Source of the DNA: Entomortierella parvispora E1425
Lineage: Eukaryota > Fungi > Mortierellomycota
Direction of reading: 5' to 3'
Assembly (NCBI GenBank): GCA_020891255.1
Contig: BQFW01000013.1
Location: 2,542,001 to 2,606,000 of the forward strand
DNA length: 64,000 bases
The notes under the pieces are model-generated. The model had not been told where the DNA came from, did not search any database, and worked only from the letters and a program-made list of their open reading frames with translations. Positions 37,401 through 49,792 of the stretch are shown in pieces. A program made the position numbers and the translations under genes. Position 1 is the first letter of the stretch; each line of letters opens with the position of its first letter.

Positions 37401-40400
37401 CGCCCACCTCCTCTCCTTCCCATCTCTCAACGACTACAAGGCCCCCGGAGCCATGCCCACCCCCACCGCCAATACCCATGCTGCCGCCACTCCCACCCCT
37501 CAGAACTACACCCCTCTTTCTCTCAAGAGCATTCGCCTCGCAAAGTCGCGAAGCAAGCTTCGTCATGACCCCGACATTGGTGTCGCCACAGGCATCAGAC
37601 GCAATTCTGGTCCCAAGAACGCAAACTCATCCACAGCAACCCCATCCATCTCTGGAAATGCAGGACTAGACGAGTCCATCTTTGATTCCTCACCGTCGAC
37701 CCAACTACCGCCCCTTCCAACAGACAACACCCCGCCCACAACAAGCGCTGGCGCACGGCATCGCGAGAGCTCCACCAGCTCGACCATCGGCTACAGTATG
37801 CCACCGTCCACACCTCGGCCTATCTTGAAGGACACCTCCGCAAGGGACAAGGCATTGAGGGAGAGCTGGATGTCAGAGCCTCCTGGTGCGGCTCTTGCCG
37901 GCACCGTGCCTTCAGCCCCCACCCGCCTCTCTGGCGTCCCTTACTCGACACCGGTGGCCCCTCCAAAGAGTCTTGCCAGGAACAATAGCTCGCGACGTCA
38001 GTCCAGACTCAGTCGCATGTCTGCCGTGGAGTATGATCAGGATGCACTCACGCCGCGACCCCGCAACTTGCCCACAGGATACGGTCCAGATTATCGCCCT
38101 CGGAGACAGAGCGGCGGACCTGGACACCTTTTATTCGCCTTTGACAACTCTGCGTCGAGTGTCGACATGGAGAGCGAAGACTACGACGACAGTGACACGG
38201 AAGAAGGACATACGCACTCGAAGCACTTGCAGGAGCAGTACCTGCGCATGCAGAAATCCCAGCTGCGTCAGTCTGTTCTCGACATTCCCGTTACTGCTGG
38301 ATCGACGCGGCCAAGATCAGGCACAGGAGGAGCACAATCAGGCGACGAGGGACACTATTTCGAGACGAGGGCTCAACGTAAATCACTGGGCGATGAGCTC
38401 AACGTGCCCCCCGTCCCCGAAAAGAGCACCCAGCGCAAAAGAGTCTCCACCGTCGACGCTGCCACGCTGCCGGCTGTCTCGTCCTCGTTCTCGTCAGCCT
38501 TGGCAGCGGCGAGCAGCAGCGCCACTTCTGCCTCTGAAACGCTCTCCTCCATCATTCGGTCCAACACTACGCAGCCCAAGGATCGCAGACACCAGGGCGC
38601 TTTGGGTCACAACTCTCTATCGTTTGAACCCTTGTTCGCTCTGAAGGATGCTGGCTCCAAAGCAGGATCGACGGATGAATTGCAGCAATTGCCTCCTCAT
38701 TTTACAGAGACAGCGAGCAGTCGACTCTCGACTGTTTCGGATGCAGAGTGGATCACCGCTCTAAAGTCTCTGGACCCCAGTCAAAAGGACGTCGCCATCC
38801 TAGATTTGAGCAAACGGGAGTTGTACGAAATCCCCACTGGTCTTCCCGCCAGTACGTTCTGCTCCCATTCACAATTAATTTCATGCACGGATCAAATGCT
38901 CACAGACCGTCGTCCCCCCCTGTTCTAACATTATTCGGCTCTCATGAACTCCTAGGTATTTCACATCTGCGTCTGGCCTACAACTCGATTCAGTCCATTC
39001 TTCCCATTGTCAATTTGACCAGTCTGAGCAATCTGCAAGTATTGGACCTATGTGACAACGGTCTGGAACTGTTGCCTTCAGAATTGGGCCGTCTGACAAA
39101 ACTCAAGGAGCTGCACCTCTCCAACAATAAGCTGCGAAAACTGCCGGATGCCGTTCAAAAGATGGTCAGCCTGGAGGTGCTGGATGTGCGGAACAATGAT
39201 TTTTATTTGTTGAGTAAGTCATGCACTGCACAGTGTTTTTTTATTTGTAAAAGATAACAAAAACAACAAATCGTTGTAAAATTAGACTGCAATTATTGAC
39301 CTTTTTTTTTTTTTTTTCTTTCTTTCTTTCTTCCTCTTTCCGTTTAGATCCTGCACTGGGCCGTTTGAAATCTCTGAGGCATTTGGATGTTCGCAGCAAC
39401 AAGCTAAAGTCGTTGCCAGCCTCCTTCCATATGCTCTCGTCCACGCTGGTGGTCTTGCTTGTGGACGGCAACCAGTTTGCTCAACCTTTCTCCGACCTTC
39501 TTCAACCACTCTTGCTCGATGACACTGCATCTACCGTTTCTGAGCAGCAGAGCTTCCTTGGCGACGACCCCTATGGTGACTCTCAGAGGGGAAGGGACCA
39601 ACCTACGACGCGATCCGTAGGTGGCTATGAACCTTGGAGAAGGGCTATCACGCCAGTCTCCAGGCGTGGTGCACCCATGTTGGCCAAGCGTCGATCCCAT
39701 GGAGATCTCATGACCATGATCGGACTCCAAAAGAAGGAATCGGTGGACAGCTTGGACATGATCAACCTAGAGTCGTACATGAAAGCCAGTACTATCTCAG
39801 GATCCACTGGAGGGTACCTTGCCGCCTCATTGTCGGAAAACTCTGGCGGTAGAAGGGAACGATCTGTCTCCACCTCTGGGCTGGTCCCAACGGCAGGTCA
39901 CCATGACGACCATCCAGTGCCCAGCCTCAACTCCCCCTCGGCCGGATCCTTGTCACTCAACCGGTTCTTCAAATCCATTCGCAAGAGCAGTCGTTCCTCC
40001 CTTAAGGACGGGTCTTCAAACCGCTTTGCAGCTACAGGTGAATTGGATCCTGCTCTGGATGGAGACTTTGAGCCGGAAACAAAGCAAACCTCGAGAGGTT
40101 CCGAGTCTGCAATGTCCACTCTGGGCAAAAAGCCGCCCTCTGGGGGCATCAACCAATGGGTCCGGGATCGACTCCACAAGAGAACCAACTCGAGCGACCA
40201 AGGGGTGTACAGTGCTAATGGAGACTCTCAGGATCAAGACGATGTCATGACGACTCGGGATTCTGGATATGGAGCCATCGGAGGTATGGGTCACAGCAAC
40301 GGCACCACCGATTCGCTTCATAGCGCTAGGGGCTCTGGCATGCTTGGCATCCGATACCAAAACAAGAGCACGGGTCACTTGCCTGCAGGACTCCCTCTTT

Positions 40401-41300
40401 CACCACGCGATTCTCAGCTTTCGGCCTCGTTTGACCCCTCCCGTAAAGACAGGAACAACCGGTTGAGCTACATGAGCATGGACAGTCAACTGACGCTTGG
40501 AACTGAAAGGGAGTCTGACTATGCAGATGCTGAAGTGGCCCTTGCGCACCAGCAACAGCAACAGCTGCAACAGCACCATCGCCTGTCCTCCATGCACTCG
40601 CCTACGACTCCTCTGCCCTCTTCACCTGTCATGAATGGACATTGGGGCAGTCATACCTCTCGCAGTCAAACTGCAGCCCACATCAAACCTTTGATGCGCT
40701 ACCTCAAGGACCTCGACGATTTGGATCCCGACTCTTCCGAATGGGAGGAAGTGTATGCCTGGAGACGAGTGTGGAACGCAGAGCGATCCCCAACGGCCGA
40801 CACGCCCGGCGCCAAGACCAAGGATGATGAGAAAGAAGATACGGAGGGCGACGCTGTGGATCTGGCAGAACGGGCCGCCAAAGAAGAAGAGATTCGACTG
40901 GCCAAGCTCCAGGCGCAGGCTTCTAGAAGACGCAGGATCGTGGACGAGATCATTTCGACCGAAAGGACGTATGTGGAGGGTCTGAAGGGTCTGGTCGAGA
41001 TTTACTTGACCCCCGCCCTGGCCATCATGCCCCCCAGCGACCACAAGGCCGTTTTCTCGACCGCAGAGGGCATCTGCAAGTTCCATGCCGATCACTTTTT
41101 GCCAGAGCTTGAAAAGGCCTACCGTGTTCATGATAAAGAGGCGACCACGAAGGAGCACCAAGACTCTACCGCAGAGGACCCAACCGTGCCAGAGTCTGCT
41201 TCGGGTAAGCAAGATGCCCCAGTCTCCTCGGCAGCATCGGCTCAAACAGTGGACCAGGACACGGCCACAGCATCCACAGCGGGCATGAGCACCAGTGCCA

Positions 41301-41339
<39 letters not shown>

Positions 41340-42541
41340 CGGACAGTGCGACCAAGGGAGTGGTGGAGGACCGGATCGGACGTGTCTTTGCCGACCATGT
41401 AGCGTACATGAAGATGTACAGTTTTTACATCAACAACTTTGACAATGCGCTCCGGGTCCTTCAGACGCAACTCACGGTGGCCAAGCACAAGAAGAAGATG
41501 AAGGAGTTTCTCCGACGCTGTGCCAAGCACCCCAAGCACACGCAGTTGGCCCTGCAAGGGTACCTCCTCTTGCCCGTGCAGAGGATCCCGCGCTACAAGC
41601 TCTTGCTACAGGATCTGTTGGAGAACACCTGGCCCAGCCATGTGGATTACCAGGACATTGCCACGGCCCTGGAGCAGATCTCGAGCCGGGCGGACGAAAT
41701 GAATGAACGGAAACGACAATATGAGAACCATGAGAAGGTGCTCTTGGTCCAGAACAGGATCTTGGGCCAGTACAAGACCCCGCTCGTGCAGCCCCATCGC
41801 AAGGTGGTCCGGGAGGGCATGCTGCATCTGATTCGTGTCATCACCCGGAACGTGTCCATGGCCGAGACCTTGGACGGCCCCTCTGCGTCCTCGGCAAGGC
41901 CTCTCTCCGGTCATGGGACGCGGTCGTTGACGCCCAGCCACAGTAGCAACAACAACAACATCAGCAACGTCGGCGACTTGACGGTCCACTACCTCTCGGA
42001 GGAGCTGGTCGAAAAGTCGTTCTTGTTCATCCTGTTCAACGATATCTTGATCCAGTGCAACCCCGTCGTCGTCAGTGGAAAGTCTTCGTCGTCGCTTGCG
42101 GCCGCTGGTGCCACGGCAGGCGGCCCCCACTCGGGTTCAGGAAACGGATCGGCCTCGTCTCATGGCGCTGGGGGCGGCACTGGTCCCTCTGCCACTGCTG
42201 CTGCAGCTGCTGCAGGAGCGTCTGGATCTGGGGACGCCAGCACAGGCAAGAATTTGGAGTTGTGCCGTGTGTTGCAGCTCGAGTCTCGACTCCACCCAGC
42301 TGAAGTCATTGGACAGGACGGTAAGGAAAAAAAAAGAAAAAAGAAAACGCGCGCATTCATGCTGGCAACAAAGACCCTCACCTTCACCTTCACTTTTTTA
42401 CTCATCTTTTTGTCTGTTGTCTTTATTGATTGCTCTCTTTGAATAGTTCTTCGAGTGGTCGATGATGCCATGGTGTTGTACTTGACGGGCGACAAGGATG
42501 TGATCCAATCGTGGAAAGAAGATATCAATTCACGTTGGTAA
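34437..42541 (+). CDS. Leucine-rich-repeat plus DH-PH (RhoGEF) protein with long disordered N-terminus, 5 exons
   Basis: LRRs (LDLSKRELYEIP, LQVLDLCDNGLELLPSELGRLTKLKELHLSNNKL). DH domain RRRIVDEIISTERTYVEGL...LLLPVQRIPRYKLLLQDLL. PH-like region ending WKEDINSRW-TAA. Confidence 0.88.
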
Positions 42542-43092
42542 CAGCTCATGCTGCCAGAGAAGAAAACAAAAGAAAAGAAAAGATTAAAAAAAAAAAAAAA
42601 AACTAAGTAGGCCGTTGTGCTGACAAGAGACTTTCATGAACATTGCAAGGGAATGGGGGGGGGGGTATACATTAATGGTCATTACAAAAAAAAAAGACTA
42701 CATGGCGGGCGCTCTATTTTGTGCTTCTCAACGGCAGATCGTGTTTGTTGACGAGGGGGAAAATGTCGATTGAAAAAAGACAAATGCCAAACAAATTAGG
42801 TGATAATACAGCTGCTGCACCTCTCCACTTCTTCTGGGGACGCCAGCGGTGCTGTCTCAAAATTCATCTGAGGCTCACTTGCGTGTCGAGGATGCCGCAT
42901 CGGTCGGTAAACCTCTTCTTCGTCCGAATCCGAAGGGCTGACCTCGTTCCTCCTGATCTCTCCGAGTTCAAGCTCGTCCCTCTCATGCGACTCTTCGTTT
43001 TCTTCCACATCCGCATCATAGTGGTTCCCGTGTGGCGTGAGAAGGTGTAGCTCGTCGTCGGATGAGCCAGTCAAGTGCGCCCGCTCTGATTG

Positions 43093-46000
43093 TCATTCAC
43101 CCAACCGACGCGATCTACGTCTCCGCAGAGACGAAAATGCGGTCGAGTAATTCTGGTTGTCTCTTTCCGTGTTGTTATTCCTGGATGGCAAGGCTACTGG
43201 GACCAAGGGTGCAGGTGGAAGGGGTTGGTTCGCTCTCCTCTGGACGTTGGGTGGAGGCATTCTTGGTTCAATCTCGTCATCGCTTTCCTCTTCTTCTAAC
43301 CCTCCTTCTTCATCCTCGTCCCCACCCTCCTCATCTTCATCATCTTCCTCATTGCCCGAATCATCCGAGTCATCACTAAACTGCAGCGAGTCGTCATACT
43401 CCTGACGCTTCACCAGTGTTAGACCAGGCGGCTGTCTGCTTTCCTTGCAAGTGACAAAGGGTTCATCCCAAGTGGCTCCAGACACCATCGAACCAAAGTC
43501 ACCACTCGGTTTCCTGATGACATTAGCGACCGGCGGGACAACAGCCACGGACTTGATCGGTTCGGTATTTTGCAACTCGCTGGCAATAGAAGAGAGGGAT
43601 CTCTGGGGGGTCAGTGGAGTCAAGCCAAAACGAACCGTTGCGTTCTCTGAACTTTGACCACTGCTACTTCCACTCGAAGTGCCGCTGTTGACGCCTGTGG
43701 TCGATCGCTTTCTTCTCGTTCCATGAAATTCTTCTAGGATTTTCGTCAGTTCTTCTGCAGAGGTGGCCATCGAATGATCATTTGTGGATCTTGGACTAAT
43801 CGTCCTTTGCGCTCGATCGCCATCGACCCATGATCCAGCACCCGCGTTAACACCATTGCTGCTGGTGTCGGCACCCTGTGATCCTGTATGCCCCTCATTC
43901 TCCTCCTCGCTCTCTTCGTCAACTTCCAAATCACGTCGGTTCCAAACGGGGAAGGAATCCATGTCTAAAAGCTCCAGTCGGATCTTGGGCAAGCCACTGC
44001 GGAGAATCATGCTCTCTGATAAGTCCTTGGATTGGACACCCTCCAACATGCGGTGACTCTTTTCGATATCTTCATCCAGACACGACTCCAGAATTTCGCC
44101 TAGACTCTTGCTCTTTTGGTGTCCAAAGGGTGGTCGAAACCGAACTGTCCGCGGCTCGTTGTCGTCCTCCTCTTCCATAGGTGAGAAACTCTCAGGACTA
44201 TGGACTCGAAACTCCGTCGGGGCTTCGTCTGTATCTTGAGAGACTGAGAACGACTCTGACGCAGTGCCTGTTGTCGGGAAGCTGAAAGGGGACATCGAGT
44301 CTTCTTCGATCCAGATGCGACTCGTCACAAATTTGTCGTCTTCAGAAGTATCGCTTCCCTGGCTGTCACTCTCCGAGTCACTCTCTTGACCAAACTTAGG
44401 ATAAGGCGTTCGCGTCATTCGAGGAGAGCCTTCTAATGAGTCCATGTTGGGACCAGCACCTGGTCTCTGCGTCCGACCCTGCATAACCTGGGCCACATCT
44501 AGATCATCAATCTCGTTCTGAAAGAGCTCATCTACTTCGCGCGCATCCGCTTTTGGGAAATCGTTGAAAACTCCTCCTGTAACATACTGCTGCAGTGGCG
44601 TATTGTCATCTGTGGCTTCTGGTATTGGAGAGTTTGCCTCGTCGACGCGACCCGCAAACGACCGCAAAGCGAAAAAGTCATCCGAGGAAAGGAAGCTGTC
44701 ATAGTTGCCAACGTTCTGTCGCATGCGAAGAGAGCCATCCGCAGATCGTTCGCCATCCTTGATACTCAGGACTGACTCGGTATCACTCTCTTCAAAAGCA
44801 TCCAGGATTTCTTTCGCCAACTCCTTGACCAACACGGCGGAATCTTCCTCTGCGATCCGAACTACAACATCAGAAATTCCGTATTGAAGCACCAACTGGA
44901 GTCGCTCTGGGTGAACATCAAAAATGGCTCGAAGGATACGAAGAAGATTCAAACGAACCACGGCTTTTGGATGGGCCAATCGGTCCAAGAGTCGCTGGAA
45001 GAGTGGAGGGAGAGCAATACCGCATGCTACGGCAGGCGAGAGTCGAATAATTTTGTGAAGTGGTTCCAGGATATTCTCAAACGAATTGGCCTTGGCAGTC
45101 AGGAATGCCTGAACAAACAAACTCAGCGACGATGGCTGAACGAGGATCTGTTCGACATCCGCAGTCTCATCCTGAAGCCTGTGGTAATGAGAAGGAAGAA
45201 ACCTTGTCAACGACATGGGGAGTCACTCGAGTTTTCTATTATCCTGTTCAATCTCAAGCTTACCATACTAAGACGGCATCCATGGCGTTCACCTGCCAGT
45301 ATGGATCCTTAAACAGTCGAAGATATACCAGCAAGGAGTCATTGCTCCAGAGAATAGTTCTGCAGGCCCTGCCTGCATGCGCCAAGTCGCACAGAATTGG
45401 AAGTGCAAACTGTTTGAGGGGAGACGCGGACTCTGCAATCTTTTGGAGATACGGGATGATTCCTGCTTGTGCTGCTTCTTCTTGGCGGGATTTGTTGATA
45501 CGGCAAAGGTTGAACAATGTTGTCAAGACGTGGTTGGAAATGTCCTATATCAGACAAAAAGACAATGATACAGAGTGTGAGTACACCTGAAAAATACGTA
45601 ACGTCAGCTTGGAACGTAGCCCAAAAGTCATTTGTACCGTGGCAAAAGGTTCCTTGCGGTCTCCAAGAACTTTGACCAGAGTGTGAATCGCACCGGCAGT
45701 CTGGAGAACATCCAGCGTGTTGGAATTCATTGAAATGTTCTTGATACACTTGAGCATCACAACGGCCAATTTAGGCGTCAAACGCTGCAAAGAGTCGAGC
45801 ATGCCTAGAGATTGACAATAACAGTCATCAGCATTGAGTCATACACACTAACGGAATCAAGACTGTCGATTCTGTTAAAATAAACCTACGATGGATGATT
45901 TGCCTCGTGGCAAGCAGCTCCTTGACCGGGGAATCGCCTTGAGAGAAGATCAAAAGGACCTGAACAATCTTCTCTGTGTAGGGCTCACCCCGAGCCTCGT

Positions 46001-49000
46001 CTCGGAGGGTATTGTGAAGTGTGGCTGAAAGTGGTTCCAGCAGCCCCTGCTTGGCTAGTAGTCGACAAAAATCGTTTCTTGGCGTCATACTCTACATGTG
46101 CCCATGGTAGTTTTATGTTAACATCATATCATCATGCTGCTGAAATGCAGCTGCAGTTCAGTCACTCACCTGGAGATTAAACACGCTGTGGATTCCATTA
46201 ATGGCGATGAAGACAAGATTCTGCTGTGTGGAGTAGTTGCCCTGCAGAAAATCGATCAAGACTCTGAGACCGCGGCAAGAAATAAACATTTGCAAAGTCA
46301 ATGGGTTGGTGTGGCAGATTTGCTGGATAAAACTGGCGGCTGCTTGTTGAATCTCCTTTCCATATCTTTTGGAGGTGTAGCGGATCAAAACCGGAATTGC
46401 GCCCACTAGGCAAAGGCTCTCTTGCAGCGCAAAGTCGTTGCGGGTTACCTACAGTGTTGGTAAACACAGAGTCAGCCAAGCGTCAAATGTACAGAATACA
46501 AGTCTCAATTTTTCTTACCATGTTGAGAATGTTGAGGAGCTTGAGCACCAAACTCTGTTGATTACAAGTTTCGATCAAGTCCAACAACGGGACCGCTCCA
46601 TGATTCGCGATGAGTGGCCCTCGCATGTCCGGATTCTCTGTTAACAGTGATATCTGAAAGAGATGGAATGCATAGGACGTTAGTCTACGAGGTCATTATG
46701 AATAAAAGAATTTGGCGAATGATGTATTTAGAATCAATTTTACCAGTCGATCGCAGACTTCCTCCATTTGTTTTTCTGATCGTTGTTTCTCCAGCTGTCG
46801 GAACTGCTCTGAAATACTTGCGCAGGTCCGAGCATATTTCTCCCGTGCAATGTTCGCCTCGAGATCTAAAAAAAAAAAAAAAAAAAAGAAGTTTGTAAAT
46901 AAAAAGAGAAGACGCCTTCAGTGTCTCCAGTTGTTTCTCTCCTGCCTACCTATTTCATCAAATCCTTCATCCACCTCTGCGAACGGGTCTTCCTCATCTG
47001 AGCCAGCATCGTTGCCAAACTGAAGGTCATAGATAGAGCCCCGGTGAGGCACAGGAACGGAGAGTGTTAGTCGACGTGGAGTTCATAGTAAGTGCCAATT
47101 GATCTTGTCATGTGTGGTTTTTATCATACCCAGCTGTGGTTTGACAACCTGGTTTGTAATGTCAAGCCTTCACTCGGATACATTGCACCTTGACTCTCTG
47201 GATAGGGTAGGATCGATGAATTAGAAAATCTTCAAAAAACAGAAATGGGTTGCTTCAAACGGGTGAATCACTTACCGGCATCTTCAAACAAGTCGGAAAA
47301 GTCATCGTCTTCTGACTCTCGGTAATTCTCAAAGTCATCTGACATCCTGGCAGGTACAAGGGCAAGTTCACCTGGCGCTGAGCGGGATCGGACCAAATCG
47401 ACGGGAGCGTGAGGCCCTGCTGATTTTCTAGACGCGAGTGAGCCACTAGGCTTGAGCGAGCTATCTGGTCTCGTGGGAGGCTTTTTCTTGCCCTGGGAGG
47501 TAACCCGTGGTTTCAAAAAGATCGGAAAATCCACTTTGTTAGTGTTTTGCGGACGATCCATATCATGAAAGCACCTGTGTATATCGCTTACCTCCATTGT
47601 TCTGACTCTGGCCTTCAGCTTGAGTTCCTGTATCTCGCCTTCGAAATCGTCATCATTAATATCACTCTCAGGATCTGCTACTGGAACTGGTCGCTGCATG
47701 AATCCAGGTCCGGCCCGTATTGTTTTAGAGACCTCATCTTCCTGGTCCCTAAAACCAGCCAACTGGATCGAAGATATTCCGTCTGCAAAATCATCATCCC
47801 AATTGTCGGTACATATTTCTGGCTCGTAGGTGCTTTGACTATTGCGCTTGTTATTTGCGTTGCTCCGGGTGGGATTGTTGTTGTTATGGTCAATGTTGCC
47901 GTTGCCGTTGCCGTTGCCGTTGATTTTTGGCCCCTGTCCCATGTTACCGCCATTCCGTTGCTGATAGAACTGAGCTGGGGGTGTTACGACAGCCGAGGAT
48001 CCATGACCAAACTGATTGCGAGCCTCTGATGATCCAGAGTTCCTTCCTTGGGACCTAGAAGTGTTGAAGATGTCCTCGATAGTCTGGTCCGTTACCCTCG
48101 GCCCTATTTGAAATAAATTCGAAAATGATGAATTTCTGGAAAACCGAGACGGACAAAACTATTAAAAGGCAAAATCCCTGGTACCTTTGTCGATAGACAT
48201 GCGCCTCACGTTGCCACGTGTCACAGTAGAGCCTTTGAGGGCCTCATTCCATTGCTGGACGCTCTTGACGGCTTCCTCGTAAGCTGGGATGGCTTTTTCT
48301 CGACTCCTTTGACTACCAGAGGCCTTTTTCTTTGACATTTGAATCCATGGATGTTTCGACAACTTCTTGGCAGATACTCTCAGATTGCAGTCCTTTTGGA
48401 AACATTGCATTAAAAAATCTCGAACGATCTATCAAGCAAAACGAGGGGCAGAGACAGTTAACGGACTGTGAGCTTGATACATGCACACTATCTCTTCAGG
48501 ACTTACAGCAGAAACGCTCTCAGGGATTGGGGGATGCTCATCGTCGACAATCTTGTAAAGTGCACCCATGGGCTGAAGATCGTGATACGGAGGCTCTCCA
48601 TCCAGCAGCTCGATAACTGTACAGCCAAGACTCCTAAAATCGCGAAAAGAGCTGGATATCAGCTTTGGGGGTGTCTGTGAAGTATGATTGTCAACATGGA
48701 GACAGTTAGACCCACCAGATGTCAGAGGCAGTAGTTGCTCCTGATAACTCTATAATCTCCGGTGCCACTGAAAAATAGGGGCTAGAGTTAGCCTGTCGCT
48801 CTGCATGTGCATCACGCGTTTCTGTGGATCAACACGTACTCCAGTAAGGCGTCCCTGCGACAGATGTATCGCCACCGACGTCATTAGAAAGTGTGGCTAC
48901 TCCAAAGTCGGCCAGTTTAACGAGTCCGTCCTTTGTTGCCAAGATGTTGGCTCCTTTGATGTCTCTATGAATGACTCCCTGGTCGTGAAGGTAGACAAGG

Positions 49001-49792
49001 CCGTCCAAAACCTGTGTTATGTACATTGCACCCAGATGCTCCGGCAGCTTTCCAAAGTTCTTGCATAGGCTCCGCAAAGACCCATTTTCGCACAATCTAT
49101 TGGGACGTGTCAGAGACGCGACAAGGCGCACGGCGGGTTATGAATTTTGTGACAAGGTACGCCCAAAAAAAAAAGGCAAATGATCACGAGAGTCCTTACT
49201 CGAGAATGATATTGAGATTGTCGCTAGTCTTTTCGAATCCATAGTACTTGACGATATTTGGATGCTATGGAGACAGGAAGGAGTGGAAGCATAAGTCGAC
49301 TGGCCTATGCCGCAGCGGATGCTTAGCAATGGACTATTGACGCCTACATTTAGTTTCTTGAGGAGGTCGATTTCCATCTATGGTCAAGACACCCACGGGC
49401 ACAGCAGACAAGAGAAGACAATTGCACAGTCAGCAGCATGATCCTTGACTGTTGGCGAGGATAGGCGAAACAAGACGAGGCAAAGCGGAGCAAAGGTAAA
49501 GAGGCAAGGGTGGTCCAACATACCATGATATTTGCAAGTTCTGACTGTGGTATGTCGGAGAGATTGATCTGCTTGACCGCCACCGTTGTTGCCGTGTCGA
49601 GATTCAATCCACGCCAAACAGATCCAAAGGCCCCCTTGCCGATGCAGTTTCCCAGCAGCTGCAGAACAAAGACGAGACAATACAGAGAGTTAGCTATCAG
49701 CAGCGCAGGAGACCTCCCCTCCTCGTCATTGCCAGTTGACTAGCCAAGGGCTTTACAATGTTGCCCACCCGGGTGGACGATCCAGAAGCCAT
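43093..49792 (-). CDS. CDC15: Cdc15/SepH (S. pombe Cdc7-like) MEN/SIN Ser/Thr kinase with armadillo-like region and long acidic tail; possible readthrough to 42796
   Basis: [38 protein letters not shown]; SepH-type helical region ([35 protein letters not shown]). Confidence 0.9.

Follow-up and report, generated by a model that had tools for sequence, protein, structure and literature searches.

Functional stop-codon readthrough in cellular genes is accepted, and few cases have a clear purpose; the best understood ones add a peroxisomal signal to metabolic enzymes. In both fungi and animals, UGA readthrough adds a peroxisomal targeting signal type 1 (PTS1), as in PGK and GAPDH of Ustilago and in MDH1 and LDHB of mammals (PMC4207609, PMC4359377). 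The type I signal, stop-CAR-YYA, which is of the tobacco mosaic virus (TMV) type, is active in yeast with all three stop codons and requires no downstream structure (PMC13517186), and adenines at positions -1 and -2 raise readthrough in yeast (PMC12233894). Predicted prenylation signals in readthrough extensions are reported for one Drosophila gene and for Arabidopsis MT1C (PMC3840789; bioRxiv 10.1101/2021.11.09.467898). The CaaX box CIIS is that of yeast Ras2, which is farnesylated and proteolysed, and in which the neighbouring Cys is palmitoylated (PMC9927470). Here we analyzed a stretch of 64,000 nucleotides (nt) of the soil fungus Entomortierella parvispora E1425 (contig BQFW01000013.1, positions 2,542,001 to 2,606,000 of the forward strand), hereafter the window, in whose numbering all coordinates are given. 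The gene under study is a minus-strand, multi-exon gene for a putative Cdc15/SepH-type kinase, and its last exon closes with GAA TGA CAA TCA. Comparative evidence indicates that readthrough has another output at this locus, namely a lipid anchor on a fraction of a core cell-cycle/septation kinase, produced via the viral-type CAR-YYA signal. On balance, we lean toward the view that Mortierellaceae hold a conserved "conditional lipid anchor", in which a leaky UGA would render a fixed minority of the Cdc15/SepH kinase farnesylated and membrane-bound.

An open frame of 98 codons beyond the stop

The elements at the 3' end of the gene are listed below, with the evidence for each in brackets; dN/dS is the ratio of non-synonymous to synonymous change, and the ortholog handles are explained in the next section.

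43093..43095, minus strand: proposed leaky UGA stop (TGA in 10 of 10 orthologous sequences, in the assembly of the probable source reads, run X1, and in the divergent strain of run X3)
42799..43092, minus strand: in-frame readthrough extension, proposed, 98 sense codons (translation; dN/dS against L001 0.27, Fisher p 3e-5)
42796..42798, minus strand: second stop TAA (next base T), end of the proposed extended isoform (alignments to X3 and to L001 directly downstream, with many 1-2-nt indels)
43081..43098, minus strand: 18-nt readthrough context GAA TGA CAA TCA GAG CGG (identical in L001/L002/L005, L004, L043 and L049)
42799..42819, minus strand: CaaX end CSSCIIT, with the box CIIT at 42799-42810 and the upstream Cys at 42817-42819 (CaaX in 9 of 9 complete loci)

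The minus strand reads ...CGG TTG GGT GAA TGA CAA TCA GAG CGG... around the stop. The other two frames close 6 and 24 codons past the TGA, and the chance of a 98-codon open run is (61/64)^98, or ~0.009. A first-pass annotation of the window had reported TGA-CAA-TCA followed by 98 in-frame codons down to 42796, had put the chance of such a run at about 1%, and had described the extension as acidic and Ser-rich; re-reading of the sequence bore out all of this. Absent from that description was the conserved end of the extension, which terminates ...ERCSSCIIT*, that is, with the CaaX box CIIT and a second Cys three residues upstream. A single copy of the 18-mer GAATGACAATCAGAGCGG is present in the 38.9-Mb genome, the closest other matches differing at 2 positions, and a repeat element was therefore rejected.

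Conservation of the stop, its context and the CaaX end

Orthologs were collected by two word searches and an exhaustive representative search, followed by contig look-ups. A Podila horticola contig (L003) and two further sequences (L006 and L007) end ahead of the stop. The sequences covering the stop are given below with the codons around it, the length of the extension and its last four residues.

Window (this genome): GAA TGA CAA TCA, 98 codons, CIIT
L001 and L002 (= L005), two Joint Genome Institute (JGI) metagenome contigs: GAA TGA CAA TCA, 95 codons, CVIT
L004, Logan contig: GAA TGA CAA TCA, 90 codons, CIIS
L049, Logan contig: GAA TGA CAA TCA, 82 codons, CIIS
L043, "Mortierella alpina" KAF9968458 (GCA_015849305.1): GAA TGA CAA TCA, 88 codons, CIVS
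L044, Modicella reniformis (GCA_015849295.1): GAA TGA CAA TCA, 74 codons, CIIS
L045, Lunasporangiospora selenospora (GCA_015680635.1): GAA TGA CAA CTA, at least 61 codons, where the contig ends
L046, Actinomortierella wolfii (GCA_016098135.1): CAT TGA CAA CGA, 32 codons, CIIS
L047, Podila minutissima (GCA_016098005.1): GAA TGA CAA CCA, 57 codons, CAVS
L050, Podila-like Logan contig: GAA TGA CAA CCA, 58 codons, CAVS

The stop was TGA in all ten orthologous sequences, and the codon following it was CAA, never CAG, again in 10/10. Position +9 was A in every sequence (10/10), while the second codon to which it belongs varied among TCA (Ser), CTA (Leu), CCA (Pro) and CGA (Arg). That CAA and the A at +9 stay constant while the encoded residue changes indicates constraint on the nucleotides and not on the protein. 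GAA stood ahead of the stop in nine of the ten, and the second downstream codon fitted YYA (TCA, CTA or CCA) in the same proportion, the CGA of Actinomortierella keeping only the final A. The base following the second stops (+4) was T, G or A and never C, unlike at the first stop.

The downstream frame was open and in frame with the kinase in 10/10, with lengths of 32, 57, 58, 74, 82, 88, 90, 95 and 98 codons where the extension is complete. Every one of the nine complete extensions ended in a CaaX box of the form C-[I/V/A]-[I/V]-[S/T] (CIIT, CVIT, CIIS four times, CIVS, and CAVS twice), and the chance of such an end from base composition is ~1-2e-4 per sequence. An upstream second Cys, three residues before the CaaX box, was seen in most lineages and was missing in Modicella and Actinomortierella. 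The first-pass annotation had left it to the orthologs to decide whether the stop, the CARYYA context and the downstream frame are conserved; all of them were kept, and the frame is under purifying selection, as set out below. The extended C-terminus is missing from the annotated orthologs examined: the deposited NCBI models KAF9968458, KAF9963367, KAF9580666, KAG0229437 and KAG0346999 all end at the TGA, without the CaaX extension.

Selection on the extension

Values of dN/dS were obtained from Nei-Gojobori counts for three close pairs and evaluated by Fisher test; the pair L043 versus L004 was saturated. The results for the extension were as follows.

Window versus L001: dN/dS 0.27; 24.5 synonymous / 32.5 non-synonymous; p 3e-5
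L004 versus L049: dN/dS 0.02; 30 synonymous / 3 non-synonymous; p 2e-19
L047 versus L050: dN/dS 0.14; 10 synonymous / 6 non-synonymous; p 3e-4

In the comparison of the window with L001, dN/dS was 0.13 over the 300 codons before the stop and 0.05 over the conserved ARM-like segment at the start of the last exon. Mismatches in the extension were distributed over the first, second and third codon positions as 3/1/28 (L004 versus L049) and 4/1/10 (L047 versus L050), and gaps within the extension totaled multiples of three. The 200 nt past the second stop, by comparison, could be aligned only with more than 20 short gaps, mostly of lengths not divisible by three. The dN/dS values, the third-position bias and the in-frame gaps together indicate that the extension is under purifying selection as coding sequence. 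It thus appears to evolve as translated sequence in the frame of the kinase, with the constraint ending at the second stop.

How the stop may be passed

The context consists of AA at positions -2 and -1 and of CAA-YYA directly after the stop, which places a C at +4, and the type I signal stop-CAR-YYA was matched in 9/10 sequences. RNA folding of the 100 nt after the stop, performed for three lineages, was no better than that of shuffled sequences (z +0.37, +0.71 and +1.60). Nucleotide-level conservation of CAA and of the A at +9, with a varying residue, is what would be expected of a readthrough signal and not of editing or splicing. Programmed readthrough had already been suggested in the first-pass annotation, and the comparative evidence (stop, context, frame and selection) supports it. 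We put the probability that TMV-type programmed readthrough makes a minor, farnesylated kinase isoform at roughly 0.8.

The CaaX isoform might alternatively be made from an edited mRNA, if A-to-I editing (UGA to UGG) turned the stop into a Trp codon in part of the transcripts or at certain stages. A-to-I editing is known from the sexual stage of filamentous ascomycetes, and it would explain just as well why the TGA is conserved and why it is followed by an open frame that is under selection and ends in a CaaX box. However, editing gives no reason for the nucleotide-level conservation of CAA-NNA after the stop or of AA before it, and no hairpin is present around the site. Known fungal editing favors sites in which U precedes the edited A; in this stop the preceding base is G, and to our knowledge such editing is undescribed in Mortierellomycota. 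We therefore regard editing as improbable.

An unrecognized or unconventional splice, using an alternative last intron or an upstream donor, could also remove the stop, in which case the CaaX isoform would be a splice variant. Fungi do append cryptic targeting signals by alternative splicing as well as by readthrough. Nevertheless, when the window and seven other lineages were scanned for in-frame introns (GTR..CTRAY..YAG, 45-700 nt) that span the stop, the window and six of the seven gave no candidate, and no acceptor with a branch site was found inside the extension of the window. The sole in-frame GT..AG that removes the stop spans 15 nt, as the first-pass annotation had noted; this mini-intron was rejected because it is too short and because the GT is lost in L001 (GGC GAA) and L004 (AAC GAA). 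Moreover, conserved coding sequence flanks the stop directly on either side (GAA, TGA, then CAA and the residues Q-S-E-R), and an intron would not hold the TGA and the readthrough hexamer invariant. These observations make splicing quite improbable.

Instead of being fused to the kinase, the downstream frame might be a separate small open reading frame (ORF) or peptide, translated after reinitiation or from a transcript of its own. The metagenome and Logan gene callers do list the downstream piece as a separate small ORF. On the other hand, it is in frame with the kinase in 10/10 sequences, where about 1 in 3 would be expected each time by chance, and it has no conserved start codon: the first Met lies at codon 65 in the window, which would leave out most of the selected sequence. 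Conservation, furthermore, starts with the first codon past the stop (QSER). A separate ORF is thus highly improbable.

We also considered a nonsense allele specific to this strain, an error in the assembly, and an ordinary stop followed by an open frame that arose by chance. One genome alone would be insufficient against these explanations, as an open run of 98 codons has a chance of ~1%. The Logan assembly of run X1, the probable source reads, gave one contig over 42400-44000 with 0 substitutions and a contig depth of 74; it differs from the genome assembly only by a GGG insertion (plus strand) in a homopolymer at 42654, the length of which is uncertain. Run X3, from another sample and another study, gave a contig ~6% divergent, covering 42720-44000. 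Its differences were tabulated by place, and judging from the totals the table is complete to 43441. No difference is listed in the 87-nt block 43027-43113, so that the TGA and its flanks are identical. Within the extension, X3 has 8 substitutions (5 synonymous and 3 non-synonymous by hand count) and one 6-nt in-frame deletion; the 76 nt directly after the TAA have 8 substitutions and six 1-2-nt indels, and the 346 nt upstream of the stop have 24 substitutions and one 6-nt deletion. Runs X4 and X5 matched only short low-complexity pieces (43302-43352) and ~42444-42550, and did not cover the stop. The TGA is thus reproduced from the probable source reads and kept in the divergent strain as well as in six or more other lineages, and the selection on the extension frame and the conserved CaaX end likewise speak against an allele, an error or a chance frame. 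A recent CGA-to-TGA nonsense mutation, the main alternative in the first-pass annotation, is refuted by the ortholog comparison, and the whole class of explanations can practically be set aside.

Selenoprotein genes typically show a conserved in-frame TGA past which the coding sequence continues, but decoding of the UGA as selenocysteine was rejected here as hardly credible, because a search for a selenocysteine insertion sequence (SECIS) over 41800-43400 gave no match even at E up to 10, a SepSecS gene was not found in the genome, and the best tRNA-Sec match, probably an ordinary long-arm tRNA (G000:C20:29684-29765, L039), reached 34 bits against a 47-bit cut-off; the site, moreover, lies in a disordered tail outside any redox motif.

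A proposed membrane-anchored isoform

Under programmed readthrough, most ribosomes would terminate at the UGA and release a soluble kinase ending ...RRLGE, while a minority would decode the UGA by a near-cognate tRNA and add 98 codons up to the TAA, giving an isoform that ends CSSCIIT. Yeast work cited in PMC4207609 leads one to expect Trp, Cys or Arg as the residue placed at the UGA. The CaaX box would then be farnesylated and processed, and the upstream Cys perhaps palmitoylated as in Ras, so that the lipid anchor would tether the extended fraction of the kinase to membranes. In such a scheme the leaky stop would set a fixed ratio of cytosolic to membrane-anchored pools from one mRNA. The variable, disordered part of the extension would serve as a linker, and its conserved start, QSER(M/I/A), may belong to the nucleotide signal. 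The CaaX boxes have a Cys fourth from the end and two aliphatic residues, and their last residue is S or T (farnesyltransferase type) in every case. Three loci for prenyltransferase beta subunits (Pfam PF00432) were found above the cut-off in the genome, on contigs C8, C5 and C13.

Several points weigh against this reading. The interior of the extension is almost unalignable across genera, and 4 of the 9 complete loci are near-duplicates of others, which leaves about six to seven independent lineages. In no ortholog examined (10 sequences) was the stop replaced by a sense codon, although a sense codon at the stop in some orthologs often accompanies validated readthrough genes. The context in Actinomortierella, with CAT before and CAA CGA after the stop, falls outside the strict YYA rule. 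The CaaX fusions that a literature search for a natural CaaX on Cdc15-type kinases returned for the mitotic exit network were all engineered, and we know of no Cdc15-family kinase that is prenylated.

If the proposal is true, this would be, as far as literature searches show, the first evolutionarily conserved cellular readthrough that adds a CaaX box, and the kinase would be the first of its pathway to be prenylated naturally. A literature search for readthrough in Mortierella returned nothing relevant. A leaky stop would be a simple way to split one kinase between the cytosol (or the spindle pole) and the membrane, and would bear on septum placement and on the coordination of nuclear division in largely coenocytic fungi. 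Mortierella alpina is transformable, and the signal should function in yeast reporters.

The kinase gene and its surroundings

The remaining features of the gene are listed below.

48841..49095, minus strand: kinase-domain exon, 85 codons, which identifies the gene (Pfam Pkinase PF00069, 77.7 bits, E 1.2e-21)
43096..45178, minus strand: last coding exon, with a conserved segment of ARM-like type at its start and then a long disordered tail rich in acidic residues and Ser (ORF; its last codon directly precedes the stop)
43096..43131, minus strand: basic motif before the stop (core [L/F]-R-R-R-x-S in most ortholog C-termini, P0001, P0003-P0007 and P0192)

Searches were made with single exons or pieces, separately. 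The exon at 48841-49095 corresponds to the N-terminal kinase domain of full-length relatives (e.g. P0004), in which the kinase domain (PF00069) is followed by an ARM-like region; a PF24768 match on these relatives was below its cut-off. The acceptor of the last exon (...ccacag followed by G, at 45179/45178) is consistent with the protein sequence of relatives, and the first ~150 residues of this exon, the ARM-like segment, share 77-96% identity with Mortierellaceae orthologs. Distant homologs of the last exon bear the names "Cytokinesis protein sepH", "Protein kinase of the Mitotic Exit Network" and "ste11 cdc15 protein kinase". Based on this architecture and on the source names of the homologs, we accept the label of a Cdc15/SepH/Cdc7-type kinase of the mitotic exit or septation initiation network (MEN/SIN) for the predicted product. 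A Pfam search of the tail and the readthrough extension gave no match.

A basic motif, [S/T]-[L/F]-R-R-R-x-S, sits 7 to ~45 residues ahead of the proposed leaky stop in most of the Mortierellaceae orthologs; in Lunasporangiospora, Q-R stands instead of x-S, and two Podila loci lack the motif (P0154, P0156 and P0193). Its sequence resembles that of a phosphorylation site for basophilic kinases or of a basic patch. The GA-rich stretch of the acidic tail at 43302-43367 (Asp/Glu codon repeats) drew short matches from many unrelated contigs in each of the four runs; these are taken to be low-complexity artefacts, as are two C/D-box snoRNA hits below threshold, the only ones from Rfam, which may also be due to chance.

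A plus-strand ORF at 39296-42442 (1048 aa as listed) ends ~350 nt from the TAA of the extension, and the two genes appear convergent. Contigs of runs X4 and X5, which have the same species label and are divergent, match 42444-42550, just beyond the end of this ORF. The interval 42553-42700 (3' untranslated and intergenic sequence) contains long T and C homopolymers.

Distribution outside Mortierellaceae

In an ortholog from Glomeromycotina (Funneliformis geosporum, L048), the stop context reads TAG GAA; 12 more codons follow, without a CaaX. In metagenome orthologs at 35-60% identity, which we take to be other fungi, the frame closes ~160-290 residues after the conserved segment at ordinary stops, and the motif was present in none; a few of them stop earlier, probably at introns. 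When metagenomes were scanned with the conserved segment, the tail was carried by one contig only (L005 = L002), and of the representative hits the best 150 included none with a CaaX end. Hence the long tail, together with the stop-plus-CaaX module, seems to have arisen in Mortierellaceae, or else in Mortierellomycotina.

Comparison with known systems

In domain order, the Mortierellaceae proteins resemble Cdc15 of S. cerevisiae, Cdc7 of S. pombe and SepH of A. nidulans, with an N-terminal Ser/Thr kinase domain followed by an ARM-like region. Unlike these, they add a disordered tail of ~550-800 residues and the stop-and-CaaX module.

The stop context is close to the type I signal of the TMV type: the stop is followed by CAA and then by TCA, CTA or CCA, adenines occupy -1 and -2, and there is no downstream RNA structure. 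It differs in that the gene is a cellular fungal one and not viral, in that the stop is UGA and not UAG, and in the CAA CGA of Actinomortierella.

With cryptic peroxisomal targeting the locus would share a leaky UGA, a short linear context and a C-terminal targeting signal on a fraction of a cytosolic protein, so that a single mRNA serves two localizations. In the peroxisomal cases, however, a short extension on metabolic enzymes brings a PTS1 tripeptide, and the stop context is UGA CUA(G). The Mortierellaceae kinase, by contrast, has CAA-YYA and a CaaX motif that follows 32-98 variable codons, on a cell-cycle/septation kinase.

The box itself can be compared with that of Ras2 (CCIIS), as CIIS is found in four orthologs and CIIT in the window, and the second Cys is comparable to the palmitoylated Cys of Ras2. 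Here, though, the motif would be confined to the readthrough isoform of a kinase of ~1800 residues, with a disordered linker in between.

The fly and Arabidopsis cases likewise have a CaaX-type signal terminating a readthrough extension. In the parts of those sources that deal with them, they are single predictor hits in genome-wide lists, and neither conservation nor a test is reported there. In Mortierellaceae, the motif has been retained throughout the family, against a background of turnover in the remainder of the extension.

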